A stretch of 64,000 bases of DNA, taken from Eutreptiella sp. 'Long Island Sound 2002'. Lineage: Eukaryota > Protista > Euglenida. A program made the translations under genes and the position numbers. The DNA is taken from assembly GCA_964036045.1 (NCBI GenBank), contig OZ038378.1, positions 1,364,001 through 1,428,000 of the forward strand. The letters run 5' to 3'. Below the pieces are notes generated by a model. That model was not told the DNA's origin, did not search any database, and saw only the letters and a list, made by a program, of their open reading frames with translations. Below are positions 12,223-64,000 of this stretch, piece by piece. Every line of letters begins with the position of its first letter. Positions within the stretch are counted from its first letter, which is position 1.

Positions 12223-12526
12223 TCATTTGGAGTAGTCTGTTTGGCCGGGCCCGGAGTTGTGGATGCCTTTGCCATTATGGAGGGTTGTTGTTGCCCGCCG
12301 CGGATTGGTTCATCGGTGTTCAATGAAGGCACCACCGCAATACTGCTTCCAGCATGTTGTTACCCCGACGTGGCCTTCTCGCTTTATAAGAATACACAAA
12401 GTCACACACATACACAAATACACAAACCCTTTTCGGCAGGCGATGTGTGCAAAAAAGGCGGCATACTCTTCGCGTGAACCCCACACTACCGGCGGTCGAA
12501 AGGGCGAACTATCGGTTATCCAAAGA

Positions 12527-18500: not shown

Positions 18501-21500
18501 TTAATGGGCTCTTCAAGGTCACTCAAGTCTTCTTGTTCCTCAACCCCATCCCGCTCCTCCAGTTCAGCCCCCAAAGGTCCGACGTGATGTGGCCCTGTTT
18601 GATTGCTATGTGCTTCGAAAGCCTTTGAGATGGCAAAGGCTATGAAGCCATTTTCAATTGCGCCCCCATTTGGGGTACCCCCAATCCAGCGAGGGTAGGA
18701 TGTTTTGGCGCCAAGTATCGAGTATGCAGGAAGACATATTGATGAATGAGCGTGTTTCATGGGGTCGAAAGTGTTGCACGAGTGTAATATGTTGTTTGCC
18801 ACCTCCCTTGAAGATACTTGACAGCATGCGCCCGACTCGTTCCGCTGCTGGTGCAACACACTGAATTGATTTTGTATCAATAACAGTGGGTGCAAGGCCT
18901 CGGCACCACAAATGACGATGCTCTAATTGGTTGTTGTAGTAGCATCATCCCCACCCCTACCGATGCAACGGGCACTTGCAGGATATCATCCAACGCATGT
19001 GCGAACTTTGTGTCGAATCCACTACGGACATGCGCACGCGGGATATTTTGTACAAGGCCAACACCACGGCCAGTAGCGACAAAAGATTCTAGTAGCGGCT
19101 TTTCAACTTAGCGAATACCGCATGACATGGTTGTGGTAGCGCACACCCTTCTTTTGATGGGCATCTAGGTCTGCCAAGTGGGTCAGTTTCCTCGTTCTAC
19201 AACTCTTCACGAATCCCCTCACTTTGGCAACCATGGTGTGGTAAGAAATAAACAAACCATGGTGCGTGGATCACGAAAGCCCACCCCGAAGACGGTCCGA
19301 AAACCCAATGAAAGGGTAACCTTTCGTACAAAAGCATTTACGGAAGGGGTACGAAAGGGTATCCACTTGACCATTTCGTAGTTCCTTCGTAGTCCTTTCG
19401 GATAGGCACCACGACGAACGGGCTCTTCAAGGTCACTCAAGTCTTCTTGTTCCAAAGGGCCGACGTGATGTGGCCATGTTTGATTGCTCCGTGCTTCGAG
19501 AGCCTCTGAGATGGCAAATGCCATGAAGCCATTTTCAATTGCCCCTCGATTTCGGGTACCCCCAATCGAGCGAGGGTAATGTAGCCATTTTGTGTACCGA
19601 TGTGGAACTCTAAGATAGCAAGGGTTATGTGGGCACATTCGCTTTTGCCTATAGTACGTTGACCCCCAAAAGGTCATGGGTAATTCAGCCAATTGCCCAG
19701 AAGAAGACGGCCAAAAACACGAGCGTTGTGTCGGGCTTTCTGAGTTTGTTGCGGATTCCGGGATCCCCAGGATAGCAAGGGGTGGGTAGCCACGTTGTCC
19801 ACATCCGCCTTCCCAAGACGGAAAGGGTTGTGTCACTTTTGTTGTGTCCTGAGTTTGGGGGCCCCCGAAGACCGCAAGGGCGACGGAGCCCATTACTGCT
19901 GGTACTGTCGTGCAAGAGCCTTCAAGGAGAAAGGGGTTATGCAGCCGCTTTTCGATTCGATCCCAACGTCCGGTACCCACCAGATGGAAGGGTTTGTGTA
20001 GGCATTTTGCCCACATGTGGACCCAGGCAGACGGCAAGGGTTTTGTGGCAAATTTAGATCTTTTCCACACTTCGGGGACCCGCAAGACGGAAGATGTTAT
20101 CGAATCATGTTTTTCCACTTGGGAGCCTCATGCTGATCGGATTTGCAATGTTGTTCCCAACGCCCCTACTCATGTGTTGCATGTTCCACAACACCGCTTT
20201 TCGTGACATGAGCATAGGCTGTATGTCCTGACTTAACGATTGTATGACATTGGGATGGTTAGTTCTTGATTTGCCGTTGAATCGGATCGGAGGGGGGGAG
20301 TTTTGGGTGAAGGCAGAATGCTCTCCAAGGCACTGCTTACTCAATAAGGCTTGTCATTACCAAGTTTGGGAGTACAAAGACAGGGCCGCAGGGCTGCATT
20401 TGCCATGAAAGGCACACCAGGTTTGGCACTATAAAAGTAAGGGCCGAGCATGCGGAATCATTGACCCCCAAAGGGTCAAGTACCACCTATAATGTTAGAA
20501 GAACACACACATTGTAGCATTTGACGCTGTAAGAAGCCATGTGTTCATGAAATCAAGTAATATTTTTGTTGATTATGTCAAGCGGCATCACACAACGGCA
20601 AGGTTTAGACCAACACCACGGCCAGTAGCGACAAAAGATTCTAGTAGCGGCTGTTCAACTTAGCGAATACCGCATGACATGGTTGTGGTAGCGCACACCC
20701 TTCTTTTGATGGGCATCTAGGTCTGCCAAGTGGGTCAGTTTCCTCGTTCTACAACTCTTCACGAATCCCCTCACTTTGGCAACCATGGTGTGGTAAGAAA
20801 TAAACAAACCATGGTGCGTGGATCACGAAAGCCCACCCCGAAGACGGTCCGAAAACCCAATGAAAGGGTAACCTTTCGTACAAAAGGGTTTACGGAAGGG
20901 GGACGAAAGGGGATCCAATGGACCCTTTCGTAGTGCTTTCGTAGTCCTCTCGAACAAGCACCACGATTAATGGGCTCTTCAAGGTCACTCAAGTCTTCTT
21001 GTTCCTCAACCCCATCCCGCTCCTCCAGTTCAGCCCCCAAAGGTCCGACGTGATGTGGCCCTGTTTGATTGCTATGTGCTTCGAAAGCCTTTGAGATGGC
21101 AAAGGCTATGAAGCCATTTTCAATTGCGCCCCCATTTGGGGTACCCCCAATCCAGCGAGGGTAGGATGTTTTGGCGCCAAGTATCGAGTATGCAGGAAGA
21201 CATATTGATGAATGAGCGTGTTTCATGGGGTCGAAAGTGTTGCACGAGTGTAATATGTTGTTTGCCACCTCCCTTGAAGATACTTGACAGCATGCGCCCG
21301 ACTCGTTCCGCTGCTGGTGCAACACACTGAATTGATTTTGTATCAATAACAGTGGGTGCAAGGCCTCGGCACCACAAATGACGATGCTCTAATTGGTTGT
21401 TGTAGTAGCATCATCCCCACCCCTACCGATGCAACGGGCACTTGCAGGATATCATCCAACGCATGTGCGAACTTTGTGTCGAATCCACTACGGACATGCG

Positions 21501-24500
21501 CACGCGGGATATTTTGTACAAGGCCAACACCACGGCCAGTAGCGACAAAAGATTCTAGTAGCGGCTTTTCAACTTAGCGAATACCGCATGACATGGTTGT
21601 GGTAGCGCACACCCTTCTTTTGATGGGCATCTAGGTCTGCCAAGTGGGTCAGTTTCCTCGTTCTACAACTCTTCACGAATCCCCTCACTTTGGCAACCAT
21701 GGTGTGGTAAGAAATAAACAAACCATGGTGCGTGGATCACGAAAGCCCACCCCGAAGACGGTCCGAAAACCCAATGAAAGGGTAACCTTTCGTACAAAAG
21801 GGTTTACGGAAGGGGTACGAAAGGGTATCCACTTGACCATTTCGTAGTTCCTTCGTAGTCCTTTCGGATAGGCACCACGACGAACGGGCTCTTCAAGGTC
21901 ACTCAAGTCTTCTTGTTCCAAAGGGCCGACGTGATGTGGCCATGTTTGATTGCTCCGTGCTTCGAGAGCCTCTGAGATGGCAAATGCCATGAAGCCATTT
22001 TTAATTGCCCCTCGATTTCGGGTACCCCCAATCGAGCGAGGGTAATGTAGCCATTTTGTGTACCGATGTGGAACTCTAAGATAGCAAGGGTTATGTGGGC
22101 ACATTCGCTTTTGCCTATAGTACGTTGACCCCCAAAAGGTCATGGGTAATTCAGCCAATTGCCCAGAAGAAGACGGCCAAAAACACGAGCGTTGTGTCGG
22201 GCTTTCTGAGTTTGTTGCGGATTCCGGGATCCCCAGGATAGCAAGGGGTGGGTAGCCACGTTGTCCACATCCGCCTTCCCAAGACGGAAAGGGTTGTGTC
22301 ACTTTTGTTGTGTCCTGAGTTTGGGGGCCCCCGAAGACCGCAAGGGCGACGGAGCCCATTACTGCTGGTACTGTCGTGCAAGAGCCTTCAAGGAGAAAGG
22401 GGTTATGCAGCCGCTTTTCGATTCGATCCCAACGTCCGGTACCCACCAGATGGAAGGGTTTGTGTAGGCATTTTGCCCACATGTGGACCCAGGCAGACGG
22501 CAAGGGTTTTGTGGCAAATTTAGATCTTTTCCACACTTCGGGGACCCGCAAGACGGAAGATGTTATCGAATCATGTTTTTCCACTTGGGAGCCTCATGCT
22601 GATCGGATTTGCAATGTTGTTCCCAACGCCCCTACTCATGTGTTGCATGTTCCACAACACCGCTTTTCGTGACATGAGCATAGGCTGTATGTCCTGACTT
22701 AACGATTGTATGACATTGGGATGGTTAGTTCTTGATTTGCCGTTGAATCGGATCGGAGGGGGGGAGTTTTGGGTGAAGGCAGAATGCTCTCCAAGGCACT
22801 GCTTACTCAATAAGGCTTGTCATTACCAAGTTTGGGAGTACAAAGACAGGGCCGCAGGGCTGCATTTGCCATGAAAGGCACACCAGGTTTGGCACTATAA
22901 AAGTAAGGGCCGAGCATGCGGAATCATTGACCCCCAAAGGGTCAAGTACCACCTATAATGTTAGAAGAACACACACATTGTAGCATTTGACGCTGTAAGA
23001 AGCCATGTGTTCATGAAATCAAATAATATTTTTGTTGATTATGTCAAGCGGCATCACACAACGGCAAGGTTTAGACCAACACCACGGCCAGTAGCGACAA
23101 AAGATTCTAGTAGCGGCTTTTCAACTTAGCGAATACCGCATGACATGGTTGTGGTAGCGCACACCCTTCTTTTGATGGGCATCTAGGTCTGCCAAGTGGG
23201 TCAGTTTCCTCGTTCTACAACTCTTCACGAATCCCCTCACTTTGGCAACCATGGTGTGGTAAGAAATAAACAAACCATGGTGCGTGGATCACGAAAGCCC
23301 ACCCCGAAGACGGTCCGAAAACCCAATGAAAGGGTAACCTTTCGTACAAAAGGGTTTACGGAAGGGGGACGAAAGGGGATCCAATGGACCCTTTCGTAGT
23401 GCTTTCGTAGTCCTCTCGAACAAGCACCACGATTAATGGGCTCTTCAAGGTCACTCAAGTCTTCTTGTTCCTCAACCCCATCCCGCTCCTCCAGTTCAGC
23501 CCCCAAAGGTCCGACGTGATGTGGCCCTGTTTGATTGCTATGTGCTTCGAAAGCCTTTGAGATGGCAAAGGCTATGAAGCCATTTTCAATTGCGCCCCCA
23601 TTTGGGGTACCCCCAATCCAGCGAGGGTAGGATGTTTTGGCGCCAAGTATCGAGTATGCAGGAAGACATATTGATGAATGAGCGTGTTTCATGGGGTCGA
23701 AAGTGTTGCACGAGTGTAATATGTTGTTTGCCACCTCCCTTGAAGATACTTGACAGCATGCGCCCGACTCGTTCCGCTGCTGGTGCAACACACTGAATTG
23801 ATTTTGTATCAATAACAGTGGGTGCAAGGCCTCGGCACCACAAATGACGATGCTCTAATTGGTTGTTGTAGTAGCATCATCCCCACCCCTACCGATGCAA
23901 CGGGCACTTGCAGGATATCATCCAACGCATGTGCGAACTTTGTGTCGAATCCACTACGGACATGCGCACGCGGGATATTTTGTACAAGGCCAACACCACG
24001 GCCAGTAGCGACAAAAGATTCTAGTAGCGGCTTTTCAACTTAGCGAATACCGCATGACATGGTTGTGGTAGCGCACACCCTTCTTTTGATGGGCATCTAG
24101 GTCTGCCAAGTGGGTCAGTTTCCTCGTTCTACAACTCTTCACGAATCCCCTCACTTTGGCAACCATGGTGTGGTAAGAAATAAACAAACCATGGTGCGTG
24201 GATCACGAAAGCCCACCCCGAAGACGGTCCGAAAACCCAATGAAAGGGTAACCTTTCGTACAAAAGGGTTTACGGAAGGGGTACGAAAGGGTATCCACTT
24301 GACCATTTCGTAGTTCTTTCGTAGTCCTTTCGGATAGGCACCACGACGAACGGGCTCTTCAAGGTCACTCAAGTCTTCTTGTTCCAAAGGGCCGACGTGA
24401 TGTGGCCATGTTTGATTGCTCCGTGCTTCGAGAGCCTCTGAGATGGCAAATGCCATGAAGCCATTTTCAATTGCCCCTCGATTTCGGGTACCCCCAATCG

Positions 24501-25541
24501 AGCGAGGGTAATGTAGCCATTTTGTGTACCGATGTGGAACTCTAAGATAGCAAGGGTTATGTGGGCACATTCGCTTTTGCCTATAGTACGTTGACCCCCA
24601 AAAGGTCATGGGTAATTCAGCCAATTGCCCAGAAGAAGACGTCCAAAAACACGAGCGTTGTGTCGGGCTTTCTGAGTTTGTTGCGGATTCCGGGATCCCC
24701 AGGATAGCAAGGGGTGGGTAGCCACGTTGTCCACATCCGCCTTCCCAAGACGGAAAGGGTTGTGTCACTTTTGTTGTGTCCTGAGTTTGGGGGCCCCCGA
24801 AGACCGCAAGGGCGACGGAGCCCATTACTGCTGGTACTGTCGTGCAAGAGCCTTCAAGGAGAAAGGGGTTATGCAGCCGCTTTTCGATTCGATCCCAACG
24901 TCCGGTACCCACCAGATGGAAGGGTTTGTGTAGGCATTTTGCCCACATGTGGACCCAGGCAGACGGCAAGGGTTTTGTGGCAAATTTAGATCTTTTCCAC
25001 ACTTCGGGGACCCGCAAGACGGAAGATGTTATCGAATCATGTTTTTCCACTTGGGAGCCTCATGCTGATCGGATTTGCAATGTTGTTCCCAACGCCCCTA
25101 CTCATGTGTTGCATGTTCCACAACACCGCTTTTCGTGACATGAGCATAGGCTGTATGTCCTGACTTAACGATTGTATGACATTCGGATGGTTAGTTCTTG
25201 ATTTGCCGTTGAATCGGATCGGAGGGGGGGAGTTTTGGGTGAAGGCAGAATGCTCCCCAAGGCACTGCTTACTCAATAAGGCTTGTCATTACCAAGTTTG
25301 GGAGTACAAAGACAGGGCCGCAGGGCTGCATTTGCCATGAAAGGCACACCAGGTTTGGCACTATAAAAGTAAGGGCCGAGCATGCGGAATCATTGACCCC
25401 CAAAGGGTCAAGTACCACCTATAATGTTAGAAGAACACACACATTGTAGCATTTGACGCTGTAAGAAGCCATGTGTTCATGAAATCAAGTAATATTTTTG
25501 TTGATTATGTCAAGCGGCATCACACAACGGCAAGGTTTAGA
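12527..25541. repeat. Higher-order tandem array: partial A + 5 x 2466-bp unit (module A 914 bp + module B 1552 bp)
   Basis: Marker ccaacaccacggccagtagcgac occurs at 13212, 14126, 15678, 16592, 18144, 19058, 20610, 21524, 23076 and 23990. Copies differ by only scattered SNPs, and A and B share their first ~0.5 kb. Confidence 0.97.
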
Positions 25542-27415
25542 GCATGATTCATTCATGTCTACTTAGGGGAGAGTCGATTTTCCCAATACCTCAAAGTGCC
25601 AGGGCCCGAATCCTCTTTTCCATCTTCCGGGATCTCCTGAAGTGGTTGTATGGACTCGCACAACACATGCACATACACTAGTTGACCCAATTCGTTATTG
25701 TGTGCTGTCCGGCGGTAGGGAGCGGCCTTCGAGGAGTGGATCCTCCAAGCTTTCAAACAACATGTTGAAGGTTACGGATGGGTGCTTTCGGCTCAACTTC
25801 TACGTCAAGATTCTTGCTCCTTACCCGTCTATCGCCCCCCCTGTCACTTTCATGAATCGCATCCCGAGCTTGCTCTCGGGTGAACTATTTTCTCCTTGAG
25901 CCGTCTTATCCTCTTTCGGGGTGCAATTCTTGGGTCTTTTTCTTCTTCCTCTTCTTGCTCGTCATCCCGCCCTGTGTCTAGCTAGAAAGATAAAATGGGT
26001 TGCGACTCCATTGACTCAAATGTGTGTTCCAATATTTAAGTGTCCTATATTTGTATATCCACAAATTGATTATGTTTCACATAACTAGAAATAAGCTAAA
26101 CCAAAAACAATATCACATAAAACAAAGATCGCAAAATGGGCACATAAAACTATGTAATTTTTTGGAGGGGTGCACACGAGCAAAAATTTATCTAAAACAA
26201 TTCCTCCATTGTTTGTTTGTGGAAAAAACGTTTCGATACAAAATAACCCTACTCTCTTCCCAACCCAACAACAACAAAGGCAAACAAGAGCAAAGGCAAA
26301 ACAAGGAAAACACAAAGGAAGTGTACTCTCACTCGATCGTGACAAGGTTCATGGTCCCCGCCTGCCACCCCAGCCAGGACAGGGGGCGCTATACTCCCCT
26401 AACTGGGTGGTTCTACCATGTCTACCTTCTTCCTCATCTTGCTCTTCAAGGTCGCTCAACCTCTCCGTCAAGCATATGAACTTCCATCCGCAAGCCTTCT
26501 CAGGTGTACCTAGGTATCTTGTAGAATGCCACAGGGAAATTGCCAGCCCCATCTCGGACGTTGTTGCTGCGCCTTCTTTTGATGGGCATCTAGGTTCGCA
26601 AAGTGGGTCAATTTCCTCGTCCTACAACTCTTCACGAACCCCCTGACTTCGGCAACCCTGGTGTGGTAAGAAATAAACAAACCATGGTGCGTGGATCACG
26701 AAAGCCCACCCCGAAGACGGTAACAAAACCCTATGAAAGGGTAACCTTTCGTACAAAAGGGTGTACGGAAGGGGTACGAAAGGGTCTCCAATCGACCCTT
26801 TTGTAGTCCTTTTGAACAAGCACCGCGATTAGGGGGCTCTTCAAGGTCACTCAAGTCTTCTTATTCCTGAACCCAATCCTGCTCCTCCGGTTTACCACCC
26901 TAAGGGCCAACATGATGTGGATGTGTTTGACTGCTACGTGCTTCGAGAGCCTTTGACATGGCAAAGGCTATGAAGCCATTTTCAATTGCGCCCCCATTTC
27001 GGGTACCCCCGATCCAGCGATGGTAGGATGTTTTGAGGTCGGGTATCGAGTATGCAGGAAGACATATTGATGAATGAGCGTGTTTGATGCCATTGAAAGT
27101 GTTGCACGAGTGTAATATGATGCTTGCCACCTCCCTTGAAGATACGTGACAACGTACGCCCGACTCGTTACGGCGCTTGTGCAACACACGGAATTGCTTT
27201 TGTATCTATAACAGTGGGTGCAAGGCCTCGACGCCACAAATGACGATGCTCTAATTGGTTGTTGCAGCAGCATCATCCCCACCCCTACCGCTGCAACGGG
27301 CACCTGCAGGATATCGTCTACCGCGTGTGCGAACTTTGTGTCAAATCCACTATAGACATGTGCACGCGGGAGATTGTGTACAAGGCCAACACCACGGCCA
27401 GTAACGACAAATGAT
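25542..27415. repeat. Diverged monomer of the same host repeat (modules C + A')
   Basis: 25542-25743 is homologous to 269-469. 26560-27415 is a diverged module A. Confidence 0.85.
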
Positions 27416-49737: not shown

Positions 49738-52513
49738 GTACCCCCATACCCTGGTGGATACATCGTTGGTGCACTTTCCAAGCACTCTATGCATGTGTTC
49801 GCCAATCAAATCAGCCTAGGTATATATGAGCAGGGTATTTATGTCCACATACGAAAGTTGATTCACCGCTTCAACAAGAAGGTCTATGGAATACTACCGA
49901 ATGGCCTCTAGTGCAAGACCCCAAACCATCTACTATCTCCTCCAATGGTTGCCTCAAATGGCTAATTTTTCCCCTTCTAGGAGTTCAAATGGTCCATGGT
50001 GTGAAAAGGAGTGGTGGCCCATACACAGGCCCATTCTACCCTACTTGTATCCTAGCCCTTGGCGAACAAAAATTGCGATGCGGGTGGAGTGAGCTTTCTG
50101 TGGTTGCCGCGGCAGACGGTCAAAAGGTGAGTCCACAACGTATACAAGCAGTCCGTGTAATGTATGTTACCTTTACCCCAATGATCAATCAACGAACAAG
50201 GGCTTTCGCGCACCACTTCTGATTGGTTTGCTAAAAGATTAAACACAATTTGACGTGTTTGCTTTCAAGGTTGCGTTGTTTAAGCCCACCCAAATGGGGA
50301 GGGGCAGTGGACAATGATGCTGCAGTTGTCTCAAAGTTGTTGATCAACATCTCTATGGAATAAAGTGCAAAACAATCCCGGGTCTCTGCGACCAAAGGCG
50401 ATGTCCACAGGGGGACAGAGGACTGGCAGTCCATGCACAGCGCCTGTTCAGAACTAGATATGAGCCCTCCTTCACCAAATGTGCCTTCAAGGGCGACGAA
50501 GGTGCTGGCGGTATTCCTCTCTATTTGCCAAGAAGGCCTTGACCAAATTCCGTGTGTGGAGAGACATGAGTTCATCATGAAGGGGAGTGATATATTCTAG
50601 TCTATATCTTGTGTGAGTTCCTTCAACGCGCAACTAAAAGCCAAGTTGCTTGAGTATTGCCCGTCAACCCGCCGCTGCCATTCACATTGTGAGCCATCGA
50701 GCAGCCTACGGAGTTTTGCATCCAATTGTCAGCATGACGAAGCGCACGCTATGAAATTTTTGCATTGGTGGCATGTACCGAATTGCCTTTTGCAAGAAGT
50801 GCGGCAAATGCCGTGCAAACCAATGCGGAAACTGATGGATTTCAGTCAGAACATTCAAAGGCACGCTTCGAGACATCGTGTTGTGTGAAGGCCCTTTTGT
50901 TCCCCAATGACACAAAAATGTTGCTATGGCCTCCTTTTATTTGTCGTTGTAAGTTTGACCTCACTTGTTTCATCCACAAGCTAAACGGTTCTTGGACCGT
51001 CTGGTAAAAGGGAAGGCATAGTGTGCCTTGCGAGCATCGCGTTTGCGTGATGCTGCAGCCTTCCACTTCCCCAAAACTTGAGTGGGTGCCTTCTGCCCCT
51101 AGGACTCAATCCAGCCCTTCAACTCTAGCGAAGTCCACCAATGTGACAGCCACAAGCAAAGGAGGGCCTCCGCAGGCTCACTCATGTCTGGGGGGGTCTT
51201 TGGAGGGATTTTGCCGTCTGCAATATCCACACAAGCACGCACAAGCGGTAGTTTGGCTCTTTGACGGATGTGATCGCGACTACTTTTGTTGATTACTTGG
51301 TCGCCCAAATGCAGGGCATGGGATCGGTTATGGTCTCTTGTTTTGGCATCATTAGCTCCTAGCACCGTTGTCTTGGATTGCAAGCTGTATCTCAAAAAAG
51401 ACGGAACAATGCATGTTCAGCGTAGAGGGCTTAGGCCTCTCCATTCTTAGTGTGTTAATGAATTGGCCCCGAAGATATCCACGAAAGTTAATTAAACCAG
51501 GGCACGTTACTAGTTGATCTCTCTATGTGCCATCCAGTTTTCATTCTTTTCTTGTTTTTGTACATGTGCCCAAAATACGTCTACATTTATGATGCAAACA
51601 CACATCGTCAGCATACAACGTACGTAGGACTGAATGTCGCACTAGTATACCGCGAGCACTAGGATGTCGCAATGCAACCAAAATCCTTTTCCACCCAAAA
51701 TGCAACATCTTGTTTAAATCTCTTCACACATGAACGCCATCCTCTTATCCATATGAATACCCGACGTCATTTTTGTACACGCACATCCCACATCCATTTT
51801 TTTGTGTTTTTCTGACCCCAAAATAAGGGGGGGGTGTCCCTAGTTTGCCTCTCAAACAACACCCGGTACCCCTGCACCCTGGTGGATACACCGTTGGTGC
51901 ACTGTCCAAGCACTCTATGCATTTGTTCGTCAATCAAATCAGCCTAGGTATATATGAGCAGGGTATTTATGTCCACATACGAAAGCTGATTGACCGCTTC
52001 AACAAGAAGGTCTATGGAATACTACCGAATGGCCTCTAGTGCAAAACCCCAAACCATCCACTATCTCCTCCAATGGTTGCCTTAAATGACTAATTTTTCC
52101 CCTTCTAGGTGAGTTCAAATGGTCCATGGTGTGAAAAGGAGTGGTGGCCCATACACAGGCCCATTCTTCCCTAGTTGTATCCTACCCCTTGGTGAACATT
52201 AGTTGCGATGCGGGTGGAGTGAGCTTTCTGTGGTTGCGGCGGCGGACGGTCAAAAGGTGAGTCCACAACGTATACAAGCAGTCCGTGTAACGACGAACAA
52301 GGGCCTTCGCGCACCACATGCTTATGATTCGTTTGCTACAAGATGAAACACAATTTGACGTGTTTGCTTTCAAGTTTGCGTTGTTTAAGCCCACCCAAAT
52401 GGGGAGGGGCAGTGGACAATGATGCTGCAGTTGTCTCAAAGTTGTTGATCAACATCTCTATCGAATAAAGTGCAAAACAACCCGGGGTCTCTCCGACCGA
52501 AGACGATGTCCAC
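49738..52513. repeat. Pair of ~0.65-kb direct repeats (49738-50410 and 51866-52513)
   Basis: Shared sequence caatcaaatcagcctaggtatatatgagcagggtatttatgtccacatacg... Paralogous ORFs 49696/51845. The second copy has a short deletion. Confidence 0.85.
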
Positions 52514-52739
52514 ACGGTGACGGTATGCGGGCTGCGGCCCTAGCAGACTGCGAAAGACTGCGCACGAACAGGCGACGCGCGCATTTACGACAACCGAAAA
52601 AACGACCGCAACTGATCTTCTGCTGAAAGGCTCAAATGGAACGCGGTTGTTTTGAACCGTTCTGCAGCCCAAATTTTTAAAATAGTTGCATTATTTTATC
52701 GCCAGATAAAGGAACGATACCTTACTGGTAACGAGGCTA

Positions 52740-53876
52740 CTCATTTTCAACTCCCTCCTACCCAATTTCAACTCCCTCTTGCTCATTTTCAAGTCCCTCC
52801 AAGTGAAAATCCACTCCCTCCTACTCAATTTCAACTCCCTCCTACTCATTTTCAAGCCCCTCCTACTCAATTTCAACTCCCTCCTACTCGATTTCAACTC
52901 CCTCCTACTCAATTTCAACTCCCTCCTACTCAATTTCAACTCCCACCTGCTCATTTTCAACTCCCTCCAAGTGAAAATCCACTCCCTCCTGCTCAATTTC
53001 AACTCCCTTCTACTCAATTTCAACTCCCTCCCACTCATTTTCAAGTCCCTCCTACTCAATTCAACTCCCTCCTACTCAATTTCAACTCCCTCCTACTCCA
53101 TTTCAACTCCCTCCTACTCAATTTCAACTCCCTCCTACTCATTTTCAACTCCCTCCAAGTGAAAATCCACTCCCTCCTACTCATTTTCAACTCCCTCCTA
53201 CTCATTTTCAACCCCCTTCTACTCAATTTCAAGTCCCTCCTACTCATTTTCAACTCCCTCCTACTCAATTTCAACTCCCTCCTACTCAATTTCAACCCCC
53301 TCCTGCTCATTTCCAACTCCCTCCAAGTGAAAATCCACTCCCTCCTACTCAATTTCAACTCCCTCCTACTCAATTTCAACTCCCTCCTACTCATTTTCAA
53401 CTCTCTGCTACTCAATTTCAACTCCCTCCTACTCAATTTCAACTCCCTCCTACTCAATTTCAACTCCTTCCTACTCATTTTCAACTCCCTCCTACTCAAT
53501 TTCAACTCCCTCCTGCTCATTTTCAAGTCCCTCCAAGTGAAAATCCACTCCCTCCTACTCAATTTCAACTCCCTCCTACTCAATTTCAACTCCCTCCTAC
53601 TCATTTTCAACTCCCTCCTACTCAATTTCAACTCCCTCGTACTCAATTTCAACTCCCTCCTACTCAATTTCAACTCCCTCCTACTCAATTTCAACTCCCT
53701 CCTGCTCATTTTCAACTTCCTCCAAGTCAAAATCCACTCCCTCCTACTCAATTTCAACTCCCTCCTACTCATTTTCAACTCCCTCCAAGTGAAAATCCAC
53801 TCCCTCCTACTCATTTTCAACTCCCTCCAAGTGAAAATGCACTGCCTCCTACTCAATTTCAACTCCCTCCTACTCA
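52740..53876. repeat. 21-bp minisatellite (ctcctactcaatttcaactcc)n, about 54 units
   Basis: Direct inspection. The period translates as the heptad LLLNFNS or SRRELKL, and there are interspersed variant units (ctccaagtgaaaatccactcc). Confidence 0.97.
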
Positions 53877-53907: not shown

Positions 53908-56900
53908 TTATAACTTCCAAAAGTCTGGGTCCTCCTTAGCCGAGTCATAATCTTCGGAACCTTCCACAATGCCATCATATTCAACCATATTGTGAATGTG
54001 TGCATGCAAATCATCATTGTACGCGGCCTGCTGCGCACTAAGGCAAGGAGCCTGTTTCACGGTGGTTAGCGCATCTGAAAGGTCAAGGGCAACATTCAGC
54101 TCTTCCGTCAGCGGCGGACCGCTACCCCTACCCCGACCCCTACCTCTTCCCTTTGTAGCACCCTTTGTACCATCCCCTCGCGTAGCGGCCTTCCTGTCAC
54201 TTGGCTGCACGGTTCGCTTCGCGGCCACGGGCGGGGGAACAGGTCGTGGTGCTTGTGCACCTGCCACATGGACCTCTGTGGAGGAGGCTCGCATGTCCAC
54301 AAATTGGTTGAGTAGCCTCTCCTCCTCTTCGAGAAAGGCCCCTGCATCCTGTCCCTTGTCGGAAAGATGAGTTGCCACTCGATCCACATTAGCTATATAC
54401 TAACGCATCCGGGACTGCAGGTTCCCAAGGGAGCGGACAATCTGCTCGCGTTTCGTTTTGGGTGGCAAATCCGCCCAGGAGGAGATGTCGGTCAACATAA
54501 TCTCATCGTCTGTAGCATGGATTGCCACGGGTACCTGCACTGTGGGTAGGGGGAGGCGTCGGCTGCTGCATTTGGCCTTGATAAGGACCTCAGTTGCAGT
54601 CTGAAATTGTTTTAAAATAAAAATTGGATTGAACAACCCAAGATGGAAGCCGACTGAAGATGACCGATGATGCAAAACAGCAAAATAGTGACGACATGGA
54701 TGCCCGACTCGGACAGCCAGTCCACAACTACACCACAACTGCGTATAGGCACCATCCACAGCCAATGGCTCGAACAGACAAACATAATGTGGACAGTTCA
54801 TGTAACGCGAAGTGCAGCTGGATTCACTTCGCTTTACCTCATATACTATGTTTTTGCCTTGGATTTGTTGCACACGTTTGGAGATCGCACAGAATCTCGG
54901 TAGGTCTACCAACTCCGTCTCAAGTGACTCGTGACACTGTCGATCATAGTTCCATAAGGGTGCTGCCCTGTTGGCATCTATATATTGGGCCTCCCTGGAC
55001 ACGTCATACTCATACACGAGGTACGCAGATGAAGCATTCATCTGCTGGAGCATTCTATCAAACGCCCAGCTTGTCACCTTGCCTAAAACGAACTTGACAT
55101 AGAATGGGAAGGCTTGGTTAGCTGTTTGGTGATTGGCGTGTCGGTGATTCACCATTTCAGTATATTCAAGTTTATAGCCCTCCTTGGAGAGCAAGTGCAA
55201 AACAGATAGAAAAATGTGGTAGTAACCTTTTCTTGCACTCACGTGGCGCTTTATGCGGCAATTCAAAGACTCAGCCCTCTGTGTGGACTTGCAGCCGAGG
55301 TTAAAAACTTCTACCTGCCATGCAACACACCAACAGTCAAGACGATGTAGGGGGGATCTGACTCCAAGGTAGTCCTTGACAGTTTTCCAGCGGGGGTCCT
55401 CCAGAATTTTGCGCCAGAGAATATCAACAGCGTCCTTATCTGGGCACTCCTGAACCTGTCGGATGGCGCTCTCAAGAGCAGTGAAATCGTGTTGCTCGAG
55501 GGAGTTTCGGCAGTTTTCGGCCAGATTTTTGTAAATGTGAAAAAGGCAGAGGAAGTGAGCAGTTTGGTCCGGGGGGAAAACCCTGGGAACGGACCCCAAG
55601 AGGGCGTATGCAGCATCACTGAACAAAACCCGGGGGGCACAACCGGTTGCCTTTATCCACTCCTGCCAGAGCCACTCATAATCCTCTGCATTTTCATCGC
55701 TTGGCATGCAGCCCTGAGCCAGGAGAAGGGTTTGGCCATGTTCGTTGATACCGCAAAACAGGGCCACTGCCTCACCGTACCGATACGTTTTATCTTGAAA
55801 AATGACTTGTGCATATTTTCTGGCGTTTTTTACTTGCTCTGGCGTCATAAAAAACCATCTTCGTACAACACCAGTGACTGGGTCAGGGGCTTCATGATTG
55901 AAATACCCGGCAGGATCTGCCTGTTTGAGCATTTTCAGGTGGTTAATCAAACGTGCAAGATCATTTGGGCCCATCTTGCGTTCGATGGACTTGAAAAAAT
56001 TTCTGATGTGCTTGGTTGAATACCCTTTGATGGCTGGGTACGCGTCCTCGCTATATTTCTTCCTCAAATTTACAAGAATTTGCTCCGACATTTTACGGTG
56101 CTCATACGCCCGCTCAAGGTCGTGCCAGAACTGATCAGGGAGGGCTGAATTGTCCAGTGGGGCGGCCTCCTCCTCGTCAGGCCACCAATGGTCAGAGTGG
56201 TCCCAATTACACTCGGTTAGCTTCCACGGGCCCGTGCCAGGATCATGGGTTAGCGTTGCACCATATGGACACAAATCAGTCTTTGTGAGAGGCCGGGCTG
56301 CTTTTCTGGGCTGCTCTACTGGTTTCTTTTAGGGGCCTGTGTTGTTTTACACGTCCCCAAATGCGACAACCAATACGTGCCCAATTACTCCCCCCTGCAG
56401 CCTTGCTGGTAACACTGTTCTGTATTGCCAACTCCCCCCGAATCCTATTTAGGTATGCAACAGCCTCGGTGTGGGACGGGAAGGTGCAGTCAACCTCGTC
56501 TCCAGGTCGGGGGGAGTGCTCGGAGGGACAATGGGCTTCGCGTTTCACGCGTTTGCGGGGGGGGGGGGTGTCGGGATGAGGTTTAGGATCAGAACGCGGT
56601 GACTGGGCGGCACTAAACTCATGCTTAATTAAGGGGGCCGGACCCGTAGATTCCGTGGGTCCCGAGTCAGATGCCGGGGTTGGAGATATGATGGCAGGGG
56701 GGTTTCTTGCGGGGGCAGTGTTCATTGAAACTGCGTCGACCCGGGGGTACTCATTAGGCTCCATTTTTACCACGGCGGCAAGGCCAGTAGGGACAGGTCT
56801 GGATGATGCACCATTCGGAGGGCTTGTCAGAGCTTCTGGGCCTAGCACATCACTGCTTGAAACTGCCACTTCCGCGCGTTCTGTTTTGACGTTGTCCAAC

Positions 56901-57475
56901 ATTGATGAAGAAACAGATCTCAAGGTCGCACAAAACGGATCGGCATATACACCCTCAAAGAGCAAGGTCATCTTAGCGGTGGTAGGGTGGCCCATGGACG
57001 CGTGCAAGGACCAAAAATTCTTTCGAAGGAAGTCTGCGGTTTGATCCTGCAGCGGGATGCAGTTCCTTGCAACACCACCGCGGAGACGGAACAGTACAAG
57101 AACTCGTTCATTACGGACCCGGGTACCGGTTCTGCGTGAAACTCTACCAATTCGCTGATCATGAACGGGCACACCAGTGATGATGCTCACCAGATTTGAG
57201 ATGGCAGCCTCACTGATATCCTTATGCACACACAGAACGAGGGTTCTGTCGAGGAGTGGCACGAAAATGGGCATCTCTTTCCTCGCACATTGTCCCTTGT
57301 GGAGTAGTCGACACGGTGAGCATCTTCGCCGCCGTTGGTGGTGTCTACGATGCCTCCGATGGAGAAGGGAGAGAACAACGGCGGCCGAAACGACACCACA
57401 AAAGACCATGGTCAGCCCCACAAGGCTCCAGCCGACATCGCATATTGCGCAGAGCAAAAACATTAAGATGGACAT
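53908..57475 (-). pseudogene. Mutator-like (FAR1-MULE-SWIM) transposase with N-terminal ubiquitin-like domain; one frameshift and one nonsense codon
   Basis: MULE core VIFQDKTY...RVLFSDAA...FLCLFHIYKNL...TQRAESLN. SWIM CSCGLAVRVGHPCRHYFAVL. A FAR1-like domain is split across ORFs 56276-57475 and 54400-56274. 53908-54387 is in frame after the TAG at 54400-54402. Confidence 0.88.
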
Positions 57476-57509
57476 GTCTACAACGATGCCCGAACGTGAG
57501 AGGCTTACC

Positions 57510-58945
57510 CCTTTTATTGATTCACAAAGGTCCTCTGATGCACGAATTTTATAGGCTAACCCCTGACTTATGATTTACCAGGGGCCTCTGATGCACGTAC
57601 TTGATAGGCTACCCCCTGACTATTGACTTACCAGGGGCCTCTGATGCACGAACTTGATAGGCTACCCCCTGACTATTGATTTACCGGGGGCCTCTGATGC
57701 ACGAACTTGATAGGCTACCTCCTGACTATTGGTTTACCAAGGGCCTGTGATGCACGAACTTGATAGGCTACCCCCTGACTATTGATTTGCTAGGGGCCTC
57801 TGATGCACGAACCTGATAGGCTACCCCCCGATTATTGATTTACCAGGGGCCTCTGATGCACGAATTGATAGGCTACCCCCTGACTATTGGTTTGCCCGGG
57901 GCCGCTGATGCACGAACTTGATAGGCTACCCCCTGATTATTGATTTACCACGGGCCTCTGATGCACGAACTTGATAGGCTACCCCCTGATTATTGATTTA
58001 CCACGGGCCTCTGATGCACGAACTTGATAGGCTACCCCCTGGCTGTTGATTTACCGGGGGCCTGTGATGCACGAACTTGATAGGCTACCCCCTGATTATT
58101 GATGTACCAGGGGCCTCTGATGCACGAACTTGATAGGCTACCCCCTGACTATTGACTTACCAAGGGCCTCTGATGCACGAACTTGATAGGCTACCCCCTG
58201 ACTATTGAGTTACCAGGGGCCTCTGATGCACGAACTTGATAGGCTACCCCCTGACTATTGATTTACCAGCGGCCTCTGATGCACGAACTTGATAGGCTAC
58301 CCTCTGACTATTGATTTGCTAGGGGCCTCTGATGCACGAACCTGATAGGCTACCCCCCGATTATTGATTTACCAGGGGCCTCTGATGCACGAATTGATAG
58401 GCTACCCCCTGACTATTGATTTACCGGGGGCCTCTGATGCACGAACTTGATATGCTACCCCCTGATTATTGATTTACCACGGGCCTCTGATGCACGAACT
58501 TGATAGGCTACCCCCTGATTATTGATTTACCACGGGCCTCTGATGCACGAACTTGATAGGCTACCCCCTGGCTGTTGATTTACCGGGGGCCTGTGATGCA
58601 CGAACTTGATAGGCTACCCCCTGATTATTGATGTACCAGGGGCCTCTGATGCACGAACTTGATAGGCTACCCCCTGACTATTGACTTATCAAGGGCCTCT
58701 GATGCACGAACTTGATAGGCTACCCCCTGACTATTGAGTTACCAGGGGCCTCTGATGCACGAACTTGATAGGCTACCCCCTGACTATTGATTTACCAGCG
58801 GCCTCTGATGCACGAACTTGATAGGTTACCCTCTGACTATTGATTTACCGGGGGCCTCTAATGAACGAACTTGATAGGCTACCCCCTTACTTTTGATTTA
58901 CGGGGGGGCCTCTGATGCACGAACTTGATAGGCTACCGTCTGACT
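57510..58945 (+). repeat. 53-bp minisatellite, about 27 units, with an internal 529-bp (10-unit) duplication
   Basis: gcctctgatgcacgaacttgataggctaccccctgactattgatttaccaggg at 58166, 58219 and 58272. The variant ggctgttg occurs at 58041 and 58570. Confidence 0.97.
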
Positions 58946-58959
58946 CATGTATGGCAAGA

Positions 58960-59330
58960 CGTTGCCCTCCCCAGCCTTGAAGGATGCGGGGGGATGAGGG
59001 GGGTGGAGGGGGAGGTGAGGGCTGAGCTGGGGCGGGGGGGGGGGGGGGGGCAGGGAGGGGAGGGGGGAGGGTTGGGGGGCTTGGGCGGTTGGAGGGGGAA
59101 TTGGGGGGGCCCCGGGGTTGGAGGAGGGTGCGGGGGGGGATTGGGGGGGATATAGGGAGGTTTGGGGGGGGTAAGGGTGGGGCCAGGGGAGGAGGATGGC
59201 GGAGGAGGCTGGAGGGGCGTAGGGGGGAGAGGGGTGGGGGGGCTTGGGGGGGTTGGAGGGGAGGTTTGGGAGGGCCCGGGGGGGGGAGCGTGGGGGGGGG
59301 ATGCGGGGATAAAAGGGGGGAACACTGGGG
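58960..59330 (+). repeat. G-rich low-complexity tract
   Basis: Dense runs of 3-15 G. Confidence 0.85.
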
Positions 59331-60635
59331 CGTCTGACATACGACGGGCATCAACTCAATTGGTGATTGAATCATGAATCATCCAAAGGCCCACGCACGA
59401 CAGGCAAGGGAACGAAACAAATCAATCAAAGCAGAAGGATTGAGCAAGTAAAATGTGCGAATCCAGTACATGATTCTCAAGGATCCACTAGTATTTGTTC
59501 ACACTTGGGTTAAACGGGAGAAACATATTGGGAGTCAGAATCAGGCTGATGACGACAGCGCTAACTGACACCTTTAAGCACGTGGGGAAACCATAAAAAC
59601 TGGCCGGTAACCTGGAAACAAAACTCGCTGGCTGGGATTCGGCCCAGAGGATGCCGTAGCTTGGTTATCGCCCCCCTATAGGGGGACCCTGTGGCACTCG
59701 AGGTTCCCGGGGTGTGACCACACAGGATCGGCACATCTGTGGCGTCACGTGCCTTCCCCTAGCCTCGGTAGCTGCCTTACCTGCACTAATTGGCCAGCGC
59801 CGTTTCTGAGGTCCCTTTTGACCTGTTTTTAAGGTCAGGAACAAGGTTCACGCCCACTTACAATGTGGGTTGGGTCTGTATAATTCTCTTGGACCCATTT
59901 GGGTTCAAAATTCGAGTTCCCTTAACCGCACCCACGCAACTATGAAGCAAACGACGCAAACGCACTGTAGCTGTGGTGTCTTTGTAGCCTGTATCAGCCA
60001 TTACTCTCAAGGTTAGACAAACGAAAAGGGTTCGGTCCCGTCAAACCAGTCAAATCAGACGAAATGGGGTGCCGTAAAGGCACTGTTACATTTTCAAATA
60101 CCTGGGTAGATATGAATAATACTCTTGAACCTAAAAAATAGCGTGTTGTAACAACACCTGCCGTAACAGGAACAAGTACCTGTACCTGCAATCTGTCCCA
60201 CCTGGTGAAACCAGATGGAAAGTAAGCAATGGGACTCGGTCAAGATTAGATCAAATTAGACCAAGTAGGGTGCCCTTTGGCTCCAAAAAAATGAACAAAC
60301 ACCCCAATGGCGCCAAAGAGAAAGTCACAGGGCTAGACACGCGCGTATCACGCTCTCAAAAGTAGGAGGTCAAACAGAATTCACCGCGCAGGTGGTAGCT
60401 AGAGAAAGGAACAGAATGCAATGGAGCCTGGCCTTTCAATATTATATCTGGGTCCGGGAACCGGTATCACGGGTAAAATCTGCCAAGCAAACAGCAGTCT
60501 GCTGACCCCCCCGCCGTAGAAGAAAGTCGCGGAGCCTGCAATGCGTGGGTTCAGATCTCAGTCTTGGTCCGGCGATGCGCTCTGCCACTACACACGCCAT
60601 CATCTCACTGCCCAAACCACTTCACAATGCAAGCA

Positions 60636-61073
60636 CTAGAAAAACTTGTAGCGCTTCCTCTTCGGGTTCTCGGAACCGCAGAGGGGCCAATTAGGGTTAC
60701 CGGAACCCTCGCGCGAGCCCCCCCACTGACCCTCCAACCCAATGGCGGTCTCATCGGGCAGATAGACCACCCATGCAACTTGGGTGGTTTCCCCCTTTTC
60801 GGTTTCCCGCTCCACTTGCCGAAAGTTCCTACCCCCTGCAAGCCGCTTCTCATTGACGTCCGGGACCCAGAAGGCTTCAAAACTGCTGAGTCGGCCCTGA
60901 GACTCGGGCCGACAGAAGGTGAAAGGGGGGGTGCACTGGTCGGAGTCGACCAGAGCGAGGGGGAGATAGGGGACGACCTTTTCTGGTGGCAGGAGCCACT
61001 GCGTCGGATTGCCCTTGCTGAGCATCTCTTCCACCTCAGCCTTCGCCTTCTGAACAGGGACAGACCTCTTCAT
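60636..61073 (-). CDS. 145-aa ORF of unknown function; may be the C-terminal continuation of the SET gene
   Basis: Its ATG overlaps the TGA of ORF 61070-62590 (ATGA). Composition is protein-like. Confidence 0.4.
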   Translation of the reverse strand: MKRSVPVQKAKAEVEEMLSKGNPTQWLLPPEKVVPYLPLALVDSDQCTPPFTFCRPESQGRLSSFEAFWVPDVNEKRLAGGRNFRQVERETEKGETTQVAWVVYLPDETAIGLEGQWGGSREGSGNPNWPLCGSENPKRKRYKFF

Positions 61074-63528
61074 CTGCCATTTCCCACCCCAATCAACAAA
61101 TTTGGACAGAGTTGTCCAACAAAAACTTGGATCCCGAACGTCAAATTGCTCAAACCTGCTTCCTGCACCGGCAAGGACCCCGTACGAATGAACTCTTTAA
61201 AAACATTTGCCATTGCAAACGTGCAACGATACGGACCCCCGTCGACACGAGCCCTCTTTGCCTTGGGCTCGTCAGGCTCAACGCCGTAGGGGGGGCTGAC
61301 GGGGGAGCTCTTTCCCCAATGCTCAATCCGCGACTGCAGATCAGGCATCTTAGCAAGTGCCCTGGCCACCACCACCTGACAGATCCGCCTGATCCTCGGC
61401 GAATCCAAGCCTTTAGCTTCCCAGACCAGCAGAAACCAGCTGGACTTCCCCCTCAAATTCTTGCTGCACTCGGCAATGACCGAGATGCAGTGGCCCATCC
61501 CTCCCCCAGTCCCTCCACCGCCGTCGACGAGCTTAATGGGATGACCATTAACTCTGCAAATGACATGCCCATAAACCCTGTCCTTCACCCTCTCGTACAC
61601 GGGCTTGTCCTCGGTCTTGATGGTTTTTTTGCCAGGCGGAGCTGCCAGGTGCTCTGCCCGCCACTCAGCCCACTCCAGCGTCGCCCCCCACCGGCTGTCG
61701 ACACCCATAGCCCTCTCTGCCCGGACAAAAAATGTCTTCTGGCGGATACCACGCACTTCAGCATGGTATTCCGCATCATACCCCCTGAGGTCGATTCCGA
61801 CCTGCAGCCACTGACCCGTCTGGCCGTACACGTCCGTCCTATTCTGCACCGAAATCACCTCCCACTTACCACCCACAAACACCATTTCTACGACACCCCC
61901 ATAAGCAGCCCCCTCGAACCCGTAACAAAACCAGGGAGGGTAAACGCCTGCAAGTCGCGACCCAGCCGTGATGAAGTCGCCCCCCAAAGAATTCTGGTCA
62001 CCCCAGACCGTGGTCAACGGCCTGACGAACCTCCCCCTCCGCAAGTCCATCTTGAAACAACAGGTCCGGCTTTCAACCTGTGTCAAGTGCCCCCCCATCT
62101 CGGACCACAGCAGACGCACCCTGTCCCCCTTCCTGACAACAAACTGCCCCCCATCAACATGGGTCACGGTGGCCTGACTGGGGTAGGTCACCTTCGCAGA
62201 AAAATACTGGCGACCCACCATGGACCCGTCATCAGCATACAGTTGCCCTGCAGGCAGGGCAGAGGCGCTGGGAAGAATGTTCTGGGTGGTTGAAACTGGC
62301 TGGTTGGAACCTTCTGCAGCAGGGTCATCAGGGTCAGCAGCATCAGCACGTGGAGGCGAAGGGGGCAACGGGTAATCTACGCCATAGAACAGGGCCAGCT
62401 CTGTACCCGCCTTCACCTCCCGCCGGGTGTAAACTCTCGGGGTACCGTCATCTAGGTGGATGATCAAGTCGCAATCCTCCAGGCGAGGGCGAGCGTTGAT
62501 ACGGCTCAGAATATTCCCCCTTCTACCCCCGTCCACCCAAACCCCCCTCCCAGTCCTTGACTCTGCCCCCCCCGCCCTCGATGCACACAACCTTATCCCC
62601 CCTACCCGTCACGCAATCCGGTGCCGTCCCTTCAATCCTTTCCCCCTTGTACTCCCCCAGGCAGGTGTCCGCCTGAATATCCACCTTCGCTTTCAACCCC
62701 CGGCCTTCCCCAATCGTGGAGACCACGACCTCGAGGTGCTTCTTCATAGAAAAATCCCGCCGCTCCACCACCTCCCGTTGCCCCTCCTCCTCCCCCGCCC
62801 CCGTGTCCCTGGCCCGGCGTTTTTGACCCCGTGTTTTGACCCCCGCCGGTTCCTTGGCAACCCCCCCGCCCCCTTCTTCTGCCCCCTTCCGCCCACCCTC
62901 CGCCTCCGCAGTCTCGGTGTCCTGGCGCCCTTGAGTCGACCCTCTCCGCTCCTGCTCCTCTTTTTCCTACCCCTTCTCCTCCCCCGTTTTCTTTGCCTCC
63001 TCCTCCTCCTCCTCCTCCATCAACACGTCGGTCGGGGTTGGGGTGGGGGAGCGATCTTCAAGCTGCTCCGCTTTCTTCCCGGCCTCCTCCGAGGTCGTTT
63101 GACCCACCGGCGACAGGGCCTCGAAGGGGCGCCGGGGGCTGGGCGAGCCTTCTCCAAGAAGCTGGCGTTCACGACTTGGGCTTTGGCCTCGCTCCTTCTC
63201 ATGGGCCCACTTCTCCGCGAGCTCCTCTCTCCTTTCCTCCTTTTCCTTTTCCTTGAGAACTGAATACAAACAGCAAGGATCAGATTTAAATTCTTCTCGG
63301 AAAAGGAAGAAAATATTTACGCATGCAATTACATACCAAGGGCTCTCACATCCCCTCGGTGCAGGTCCCAGGACGCCTTCCTCCTCTTCTCCTGCTGCGG
63401 CTTCTCCCTGTGCCCCGCCGTCTTGAACCAATCCACGTCCTCCCCCTCTTCCGACTGCAAGTCCTCCCACCCGCGCAGCAGCTCGGCCGCCAGGTCCTTC
63501 GTCGTCTCGGACAGTGGACTCGCAAGAC
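61070..63528 (-). CDS. SET-domain protein (charged N-terminus, SET domain about 62380-62740, long uncharacterised C-terminus); frameshifts in G-rich runs
   Basis: LEVVVSTIGEGRGLKAKVDIQADTCLGEYKGERI (62523-62771 frame) joins VWVDGGRRGNILSRIN...VYTRREVKAGTELALFYGVDY (61070-62590 frame) if one G is removed from a G-run. The upstream exon is linked by a GT-AG intron. Confidence 0.72.
63260..63336 (-). other. 77-nt spliceosomal intron
   Basis: GTATGT...pyrimidine-rich...TTCAG. It is AT-rich within GC-rich exons, and removing it joins ...GDVRAL to VLKEKEKEE in frame. Confidence 0.75.
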
Positions 63529-63784
63529 CTATAGGTGCAGGGATATGGTTTCGTTTATGAGGCTCTTTGTGAATCAGTAATCAGGGGGTATCCTATCGAG
63601 GTTGATGATAAGTGGTGTTGTGCAATCAGTGGCAAACCTGCTTCTGCCCCTTTTTCATCGTCTTTTGGTGCTCCTTCTTCGCCCTCCTCCGCTGCTTCCT
63701 CCTCAGCTTCCGCTCCTTCCTCCGCTTCGGCTTCCGCTGCACCTGGATCAGAGGATGTGCGTTCTATTGCAAGGACCACCCTAG

Positions 63785-64000
63785 CAATGTCGTGCATCAG
63801 GGGCGGTAAATCAATAATCAGGGGGTAGCCAATCAAGTTCGTGCATCAGAGGCCCCTGGCAAATCAATAGTCAGGGGGTAGCCTATCAAGTTCGTGCATC
63901 AGAGGCCCTAGGTAAACCAATAGTCAGGAGGTAGCCTGTCAAGTTCGTGCATCAGAGGCCCCCGGTAAATCAATAGTCAGGGGGTAGCCTATCAAGTACG
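63785..64000 (-). repeat. 53-bp minisatellite in inverted orientation to 57510-58945; runs off the window
   Basis: gggggtagcctatcaagttcgtgcatcagaggcccc, with period 53 (caagttc at 63834 and 63887). A degenerate unit lies at about 63555-63600. Confidence 0.95.

Follow-up and report, generated by a model that had tools for sequence, protein, structure and literature searches.

The genome of the euglenid Eutreptiella sp. 'Long Island Sound 2002' contains a gene for a SET-like protein that is enclosed by two inverted arrays of one 53-bp unit and lies beside the gene for a Mutator-like element (MULE) transposase with a ubiquitin-like leader (Ub-MULE). The question raised by this locus is what kind of unit the arrays and the gene form together, and whether the gene belongs to the host or to mobile DNA. 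The original prediction had offered two answers, namely a foldback- or Pack-MULE-type element with the SET gene as its cargo, or the ends of two elements facing each other across a host gene. The window is the whole stretch of 64,000 nucleotides that was analysed, C1:1364001-1428000 of the searched assembly (2.28 Gb, 2317 contigs; C numbers denote contigs and L numbers sampled loci). An additional 26 kb to the right of the window were added to give a 90-kb stretch, which was compared with itself; positions above 64000 lie in this extension, and L043 corresponds to 60001-70000 in window numbering. The left array, the SET-like gene and the right, palindromic array (57485-65337) are probably an internal segment of a large, autonomous DNA transposon family of the Mutator-like kind.

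The family is recognized first by its copies. A protein search with the intact SET open reading frame (ORF) scored at least 53 places on many chromosomes, and approximately 35 of these ORFs are full-length, free of stop codons and 96-100% identical in amino acid sequence. The 4.4-kb SET region (59400-63780) is present in at least 30 copies with 87-97% identity, and the Ub-MULE region (54400-57475) in at least 40 copies with 95% nucleotide identity. In 18 copies, which are spread over many chromosomes, the SET ORF and the MULE region share a strand and are separated by 2.4-4.7 kb; the gap between them is 3287-3290 bp in seven of these 18 pairs and 3161 bp in the window. The region past the palindrome (65340-68400) is also multi-copy and is colinear with the SET gene at C6:2.13M, C3:160.33M, C8:3.45M and C26:6.03M. 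The presence of near-identical intact copies by the dozen indicates that the family is probably still active.

The element in the window spans about 52515 to 69380, approximately 17 kb, and this copy is broken by a frameshift and lacks its right terminus. Its genes all lie on the minus strand, and its parts follow in the order left terminus, 21-bp subterminal array, transposase gene with ubiquitin-like leader, 53-bp array, SET/PR-like plus C-domain gene, palindromic 53-bp array within a predicted intron, acidic exons, J/Ulp1-like region and inverted 21-bp array. The left terminal region (52515..52736, plus strand) starts at the insertion point in a 2.2-kb satellite, and the homology of about 40 other copies begins at 52513-52516 (query positions 92-95 of window 52422-52640). 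In at least seven copies, a distance of 1.7-2.7 kb separates this terminus from the MULE region. It is followed by a subterminal tandem array of 54 copies of a 21-bp unit (52737..53876, plus strand), called with Tandem Repeats Finder (TRF) like the other tandem arrays, whose inverted partner lies at about 68930-69380 beyond the window. An ORF of 624 aa (54400..56274, minus strand) encodes the MULE (Mutator) DDE transposase, with a Pfam PF10551 match of 45.5 bits (E 1e-11; cut-off 27.6 bits). The N-terminal ORF of the transposase gene (56276..57475, minus strand; from the ORF list) encodes a hydrophobic leader and a ubiquitin-like part that ends in RLRGG. This ORF had no match in Pfam, and a stop codon parts it from the MULE ORF in the window copy.

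The boundaries of the element were placed by the self-comparison, in which the 2.2-kb satellite extends from 49733 to about 52514-52521 and returns from about 69376-69381 to 78850. The units of this satellite, which is the insertion target, are 90-95% alike. The right end of the window copy stops within the right 21-bp array. Between the blocks of that array, a 0.5-kb (AT)n microsatellite and AT-rich repeats were observed at 68406-69320 (L043:8406-9320), which probably represent decay of the right end of this copy. Elsewhere in the assembly, coordinates show copies of the terminal sequence (110-125 bp) paired in inverted orientation at distances of 25-31 kb. One such pair, C1:9806000(+) and C1:9831384(-), is 25.5 kb apart with a SET ORF between its members at C1:9817634, and a second pair was found at C9:19388238(+) and C9:19419359(-). 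These pairs suggest that complete elements measure approximately 25 kb and may have terminal inverted repeats (TIRs) of at least 109 bp.

The gene for the SET/PR-like domain and the C-domain has its main exon at 60636..63259 (minus strand), which was delimited from the alignment of copies and the ORFs and is broken in the window copy. Its SET sequence is divided between two minus-strand frames that overlap (62523-62771 and 61070-62590), a split that had first been taken for an intron within the SET domain. The split falls at a run of G (62566-62573, minus strand) that has eight G in the window and seven in all eight other copies of a nine-copy alignment. Since the extra G is unique to the window copy, the split is a +1 frameshift or a homopolymer error and not an intron. 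Intact equivalents of the ORF measure 854 aa in L006:1355-3919 and 884 aa in L003:2010-4664, and both match the Pfam SET model over its full length (1-105/105) at 21.0 bits in L003 (E 4.6e-4) and 20.5 bits in L006, against a cut-off of 22.4 bits. The family member P0006 scored 22.9 bits, above this cut-off, and the frame-split ORFs of the window gave just a 14-bit partial SET match.

The SET/PR-like domain itself was located at 62372..62735 (minus strand) by Pfam, alignment and profile, and reads GEGRG ... LGEYKG ... GVWVDG ... SRINARP ... ELALFYG. A family profile, A2, was made from the SET-like family and two distant relatives. When it was compared with the PDB, the best match was the PR domain of PRDM4 (E 3e-7), followed by LegAS4, EZH2, PRDM14, SETD8 and SETD7, and the best 60 of 77 matches were all SET/PR proteins. 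Alignment with SETD8 showed that GEGRG (GxG), EYKG (YxG), the NH-motif Asn and the catalytic Tyr of ELALFY are kept, and revealed no post-SET segment in the SET-like protein. The gene is thus one that encodes a predicted, divergent SET/PR-type domain. The SRINARP motif is present as first described, and the divergent, PR-like character that had been proposed for the domain was borne out by the full-length Pfam alignment and by the SET/PR matches of profile A2.

Several observations weigh against an autonomous element with the properties described here. The right TIR is missing in the window, no inverted copy of the terminus lies within 37 kb, and the junctions carry an imperfect duplication of 27-34 bp of satellite sequence with four mismatches. 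Target-site duplications (TSDs) of MULEs are usually 8-11 bp long. The putative TIRs and TSD were judged from match coordinates. In the SET domain, Ala (RINARP) stands in place of the conserved NH-motif His; PRDM9, an active PR-domain enzyme, also lacks this His. An AlphaFold2 prediction of the SET domain on a shallow alignment gave a predicted local distance difference test (pLDDT) value of 32, too low for the model to be used. The ratio of nonsynonymous to synonymous substitution (dN/dS) among recent copies was 0.7-0.9 overall and approximately 1 in the SET domain, so that constraint on this domain was not detectable at the depth of recent copies. The C-domain had a dN/dS of 0.4-0.6 between subfamilies. 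Such values would be expected for young transposon copies and say little. Finally, the functions of the SET/PR-like protein, the origin of the arrays and the role of the hairpin discussed below are deduced from sequence.

The C-terminal domain of the SET-like protein, approximately 350 aa long (L006:2762-3916; window 60636-61700, minus strand), is common to three lineages at 26-30% identity. It contains invariant Gly, Arg-Cys, Phe and Trp residues, together with a His (GHC, on a strand), a Glu (EAG, on the next strand) and a Cys (RC-F, at the start of a helix). This His-Glu-Cys layout resembles that of clan CE enzymes and is regarded as a lead only. AlphaFold2 modelling of the C-terminal 520 aa gave pLDDT values of 70-88 just for residues ~250-495. 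A Foldseek search of the PDB with the C-domain model found no match at E up to 0.001, and the highest Z from VIA-align wide, 4.6, was at the noise level, with the clan-CE proteins AvrA and Lem17 at Z 3.9. A profile of the C-domain likewise found no match among PDB sequences, and none was found in Pfam. Further upstream in the gene order, an ORF in the extension (66488-67558) has an HWW...ILDS motif that resembles Ulp1/C48; it gave no Peptidase_C48 match at E up to 1 and no relative in the PDB.

Relatives of the protein were sought with HMMER among 1.84 billion representatives. There were 27 matches, mostly fragments of the SET-like family with 73-96% identity, and the distant ones were P0025 and P0027, related in the C-domain with 30% identity, and the SET-like P0032 with 35%. 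Several copies on C13 of the source genome encode P0025 with 100% identity, and this protein has a SET-like domain of its own. P0038 and P0043, which are longer members of the P0027 cluster, carry a Pfam Ulp1 (C48) domain ahead of the same C-domain (P0038, E 2e-6). P0032 has no identical copy in the source genome, where at least 20 copies of a family with approximately 52% identity are present, and further lineages occur at 31-48% identity. A word search for relatives of the SET ORF and of P0025 returned just close copies, and the ESM Atlas gave no usable match. The paralogous lineages at 25-30% amino acid identity have kept the C-domain, are multi-copy and have long open frames. Because such diverged multi-copy paralogues retain these modules, the SET-like and C-domain genes are old and have diversified.

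Two of these lineages have features of their own. Seven copies of the P0025 lineage (SET-like plus C-domain) at C13:6850966-7656057 are 99-100% identical and mostly ~110-170 kb apart, a spacing suggesting large segmental or tandem duplications. The P0032-like family consists of SET-like ORFs of ~169 aa, for example at C20:25104506-25105003 and in at least 19 other places, with exactly one in-frame TGA per listed copy.

A recent capture in the manner of Pack-MULEs, by which the SET sequence would be a host gene fragment without function for the element, is improbable in view of these lineages. According to passages in PMC6446971, MULEs are known to take up host genes. The dN/dS of approximately 1 in the SET domain of recent copies would agree with such a capture, and an ultimate origin of the SET sequence from a host SET/PR gene is plausible. 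However, the element has its own transposase, and its cargo is a full-length ORF of 854 aa rather than a fragment. Moreover, the SET-like domain and the C-domain are joined in a second lineage (25-28% amino acid identity) and the C-domain is joined to an Ulp1 protease in a third, all of them multi-copy. The same architecture in distant multi-copy lineages thus points to old, maintained transposon genes.

The remaining evidence concerns the arrays. The left 53-bp array (57485..58945, plus orientation) consists of 27.6 copies with 90% matches and separates the transposase gene from the 3' side of the SET gene, ending approximately 10 bp before the transposase ATG at 57475; the SET gene therefore adjoins the Ub-MULE gene on this side, as had been stated. 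The reverse complement of the unit was found by TRF at 63805-63997 in the window. This minus arm of the right array (63805..64000 in the window, minus orientation) runs on to 64512, where it is joined head-to-head with a plus arm at 64510-65337, and the right-hand array is thus a palindrome of 708 + 828 bp. TRF and a comparison of inverted pairs, which are up to 197 nt long and 87-96% complementary (91-96% in pairs of 196 nt), showed that the inverted arrays are real and that the coordinates first given for them were right within 25 bp. The palindromic stretch folds into a predicted hairpin of approximately 700 bp with -1236 kcal/mol.

The palindrome is not restricted to the window. The same (-)(+) arrangement was found in L012, L024, L029/L035, L031, L036 and L040, and in five of these places its centre is identical to that in the window and falls within a short inverted repeat of the unit (CCCTG...CAGGG). 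This common centre within an inverted repeat points to a single origin of the palindrome, plausibly by fold-back, after which transposition passed it on. In the main subfamily (L006:45-653), a coding-like repeat of 42 bp composed of KLEAEKKAAADEAA units, and not the long palindrome, lies upstream of the right array, which is short there; hence the array intron differs among subfamilies.

The right array is located in a predicted intron of the SET-like gene. Three consecutive GT-AG introns, all in phase 1, were predicted upstream of the SET exon, and a single frame stays open through them; these models are based on sequence and frame continuity, and the exons were examined one by one. The first (63260..63336, minus strand) has the form GTATGT ... 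pyrimidine tract ... CAG and is consistent with frame continuity. The second (63529..63637, minus strand; 109 nt) belongs by its sequence to the GTTTGCCA... family and includes one degenerate 53-bp unit. The third is 1674 nt long (65416-63743), with its 3' part at 63743..64000 (minus strand) in the window, and contains the whole palindromic array; its donor is G/GTTTGCCA at 65416, its acceptor CCAG/GT at 63743, and the frame is open on both sides. The 5' end GTTTGCCA...ATTGCAC is common to the 109-nt and 1674-nt introns and to one further candidate upstream.

A similar arrangement is possible at the left array. A proline-rich ORF from the ORF list (58946..59375, minus strand; G-rich on the plus strand) reads into this array. 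On the minus strand at 57478-58964, a GT (GTCTTGCCA, like the 5' end of the intron family) lies upstream of the left array and an AG lies just before the ATG at 57475, and the two are phase-compatible. Through this pair, the reading frame of the proline-rich ORF would continue into the transposase leader, and a chance occurrence is possible.

The context of the arrays shows what they belong to. The 53-bp unit has at least 300 matches in the assembly, and the array loci sampled from these (29 loci, representing 23 places outside the window) were compared with the window sequence. At all 29, at least one non-array flank matches the MULE-type element; these flanks are 56790-57485 and 58945-59900 at left-type arrays, and 63130-63780 and 65340-66180 at the palindromic type. 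Where a sampled left-type locus reaches both sides, both flanks are the same two element sequences. Because the element sequence continues past at least one flank at all 23 other places, the arrays are internal parts and not termini. A general genomic satellite was also considered for the arrays and was ruled out, as all sampled loci share one element context.

An independent foldback-type element, present or former, that is nested in the MULE and has the arrays as its inverted ends and the SET gene as its cargo is therefore very improbable. In several subfamilies the gene is indeed bordered on either side by inverted arrays, and inverted repeats built of arrays are generally regarded as the hallmark of foldback elements. 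Nevertheless, homology runs past at least one array flank in 23 of the 23 other sampled places, the spacing to the transposase gene is fixed, and the arms in the main subfamily are very unequal (~1.1 kb and ~0.2 kb). Furthermore, the right array is itself a palindrome within a phase-consistent predicted intron. Extension to the right, which the original prediction had proposed as a check, located the end of the array at the junction of the two arms and at 65337. No duplication flanks the arrays. An ancient nesting of a foldback element that became fixed in the ancestor of the family is possible. Of the foldback or Pack-MULE unit first envisaged, the transposon-borne SET gene has stood, whereas the arrays are not the ends, the element has a transposase of its own, and its left terminus is 5 kb further left (~52515). 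The homology among copies passes through both arrays and extends into the Ub-MULE gene at one side and the J/Ulp1-like region at the other. The SET gene is multi-copy and linked to the 53-bp arrays, rather than single-copy and free of them. A host SET gene placed by chance between the ends of two separate elements, the second of the original answers, fits the local picture in one window and has next to no probability, because at least 53 scored ORF copies on many chromosomes have the same colinear neighbours; the gene is thus not a host gene.

As a segment of a Mutator-like transposon, the SET/PR-like gene and the arrays may be given roles in the life of the element. The SET/PR-like protein would be an element-encoded accessory factor whose substrate, at element copies or targets, is chromatin or some other lysine-containing substrate, and most likely would counter or steer host silencing. 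The 53-bp arrays may have grown from an intron sequence of the element, and the palindrome would have arisen in a single fold-back event at the short inverted repeat of the unit. If transcribed, the palindromic array would give a long hairpin that could feed RNA interference, which might serve as a built-in, copy-number-dependent brake. A bolder proposal regards the element as an epigenetic toolkit. It would combine a PR-like SET methyltransferase, fused to a new clan-CE-like domain (Ulp1/YopJ-type, His-Glu-Cys), with a ubiquitin-like-tagged transposase that an element-encoded protease processes, and with an inherited hairpin of 700 bp in an intron, the source of small RNAs directed at the array by the transposase start, and it would both resist silencing and throttle its own copy number. 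The chance that this proposal holds in full is small.

Transposons of a related kind have been described. SET genes occur in MuDR and HarbingerS transposons of Phytophthora, according to passages in PMC12730594 that cite Kojima and Jurka (2014), and the Repbase family 'MULE-Phytophthora_1' is listed in part of PMC6446971 with SET in 14 members. As presented in these parts of the two sources, they are cut-and-paste transposons that combine a Mutator-type (in HarbingerS, a Harbinger-type) transposase with a SET gene, as does the euglenid element (PMC6446971; PMC12730594). They differ in their host, which is an oomycete and thus of another supergroup than the euglenid. The SET gene of the euglenid element is PR-like and fused to a conserved C-domain, the SET genes having been compared by description only. 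The euglenid element is also far larger (~17 kb in the window and ~25 kb between inverted termini elsewhere), and it has a ubiquitin-like transposase leader, a J/Ulp1-like region and internal satellite arrays.

A second group for comparison is the KI-MULEs (Kaonashi) and other Mutator elements with an additional gene for an Ulp1/C48-type protease (PMC2528002; PMC2836005), which include plant MULEs (PMC2528002). Similarly, in a paralogous lineage of the euglenid family the same C-domain is fused to a C48 domain with Pfam support, whereas the C48 call for the upstream ORF of the element itself is a motif resemblance alone. In KI-MULEs, to our knowledge, a combination of Ulp1 and SET has not been described. 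Pack-MULEs are also Mutator-type elements with non-transposase coding sequence; they contain host gene fragments and no transposase, in contrast to the autonomous design and the full-length gene conserved across lineages found here. The element carries its own transposase and is thus not a Pack-MULE.

The arrays invite two further comparisons. The foldback (FB) elements of Drosophila have long inverted repeats of short tandem units and can form long hairpins. Inverted repeats of tandem units and the capacity to form a hairpin are shared by the euglenid element. However, the arrays of FB are its termini, whereas the 53-bp arrays are internal, one of them in a predicted intron, and the termini are of another sequence with a 21-bp subterminal array. 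In maize, Mu killer consists of Mutator sequence duplicated in inverted orientation, and its hairpin RNA silences MuDR. A comparable hairpin would be formed by the palindromic array, as predicted from its fold. As a rearranged derivative, Mu killer sits at one locus and covers transposase sequence; by contrast, the hairpin of the euglenid family is an inherited part of the element, lies in a predicted intron, consists of satellite units and has a putative role in silencing. No description of MULE families in Euglena was found in the literature searched. SET-carrying Mutator elements are thus already known from Phytophthora, and the euglenid family is a variant of them and not a foldback element, a Pack-MULE or a host gene.

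The surroundings of the element are also repetitive. Tandem repeats with more than 99.5% identity occupy 1-12526 and 13209-25544 of the window, with units of ~2.5 and 4.96 kb at 1-11190 and of 2466 bp at 13209-25544. Together with the 2.2-kb satellite, these large tandem repeats mark a repeat-rich region 1.4 Mb from the start of the contig.

In this euglenid lineage, a 2-Gb genome consists mostly of unclassified repeats (PMC11252322). A spliced-leader sequence known from Euglena gracilis was counted 5458 times in the assembly and 0 times in a reversed control, which would place the source genome in that species or very near it. For annotation, the 'SET genes' and the 53-bp satellites of the source genome are to be masked as one transposon family and not treated as host genes. 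The family also defines a conserved domain of 350 aa, found together with SET or Ulp1 modules in three or more transposon-linked lineages, and it offers a clean case in which a presumably intron-derived satellite within a transposon gene has turned into an inherited palindrome. Transposons with chromatin- or DNA-modification enzymes of their own are a small, growing class that includes VANC in VANDAL, TET/JBP in fungal elements and SET in MuDR and HarbingerS of Phytophthora. Such enzyme-carrying transposons are relevant to the ways in which mobile DNA evades silencing or manipulates it. The family described here places a SET transposon gene in a euglenid, with dozens of near-identical intact copies that are experimentally accessible.

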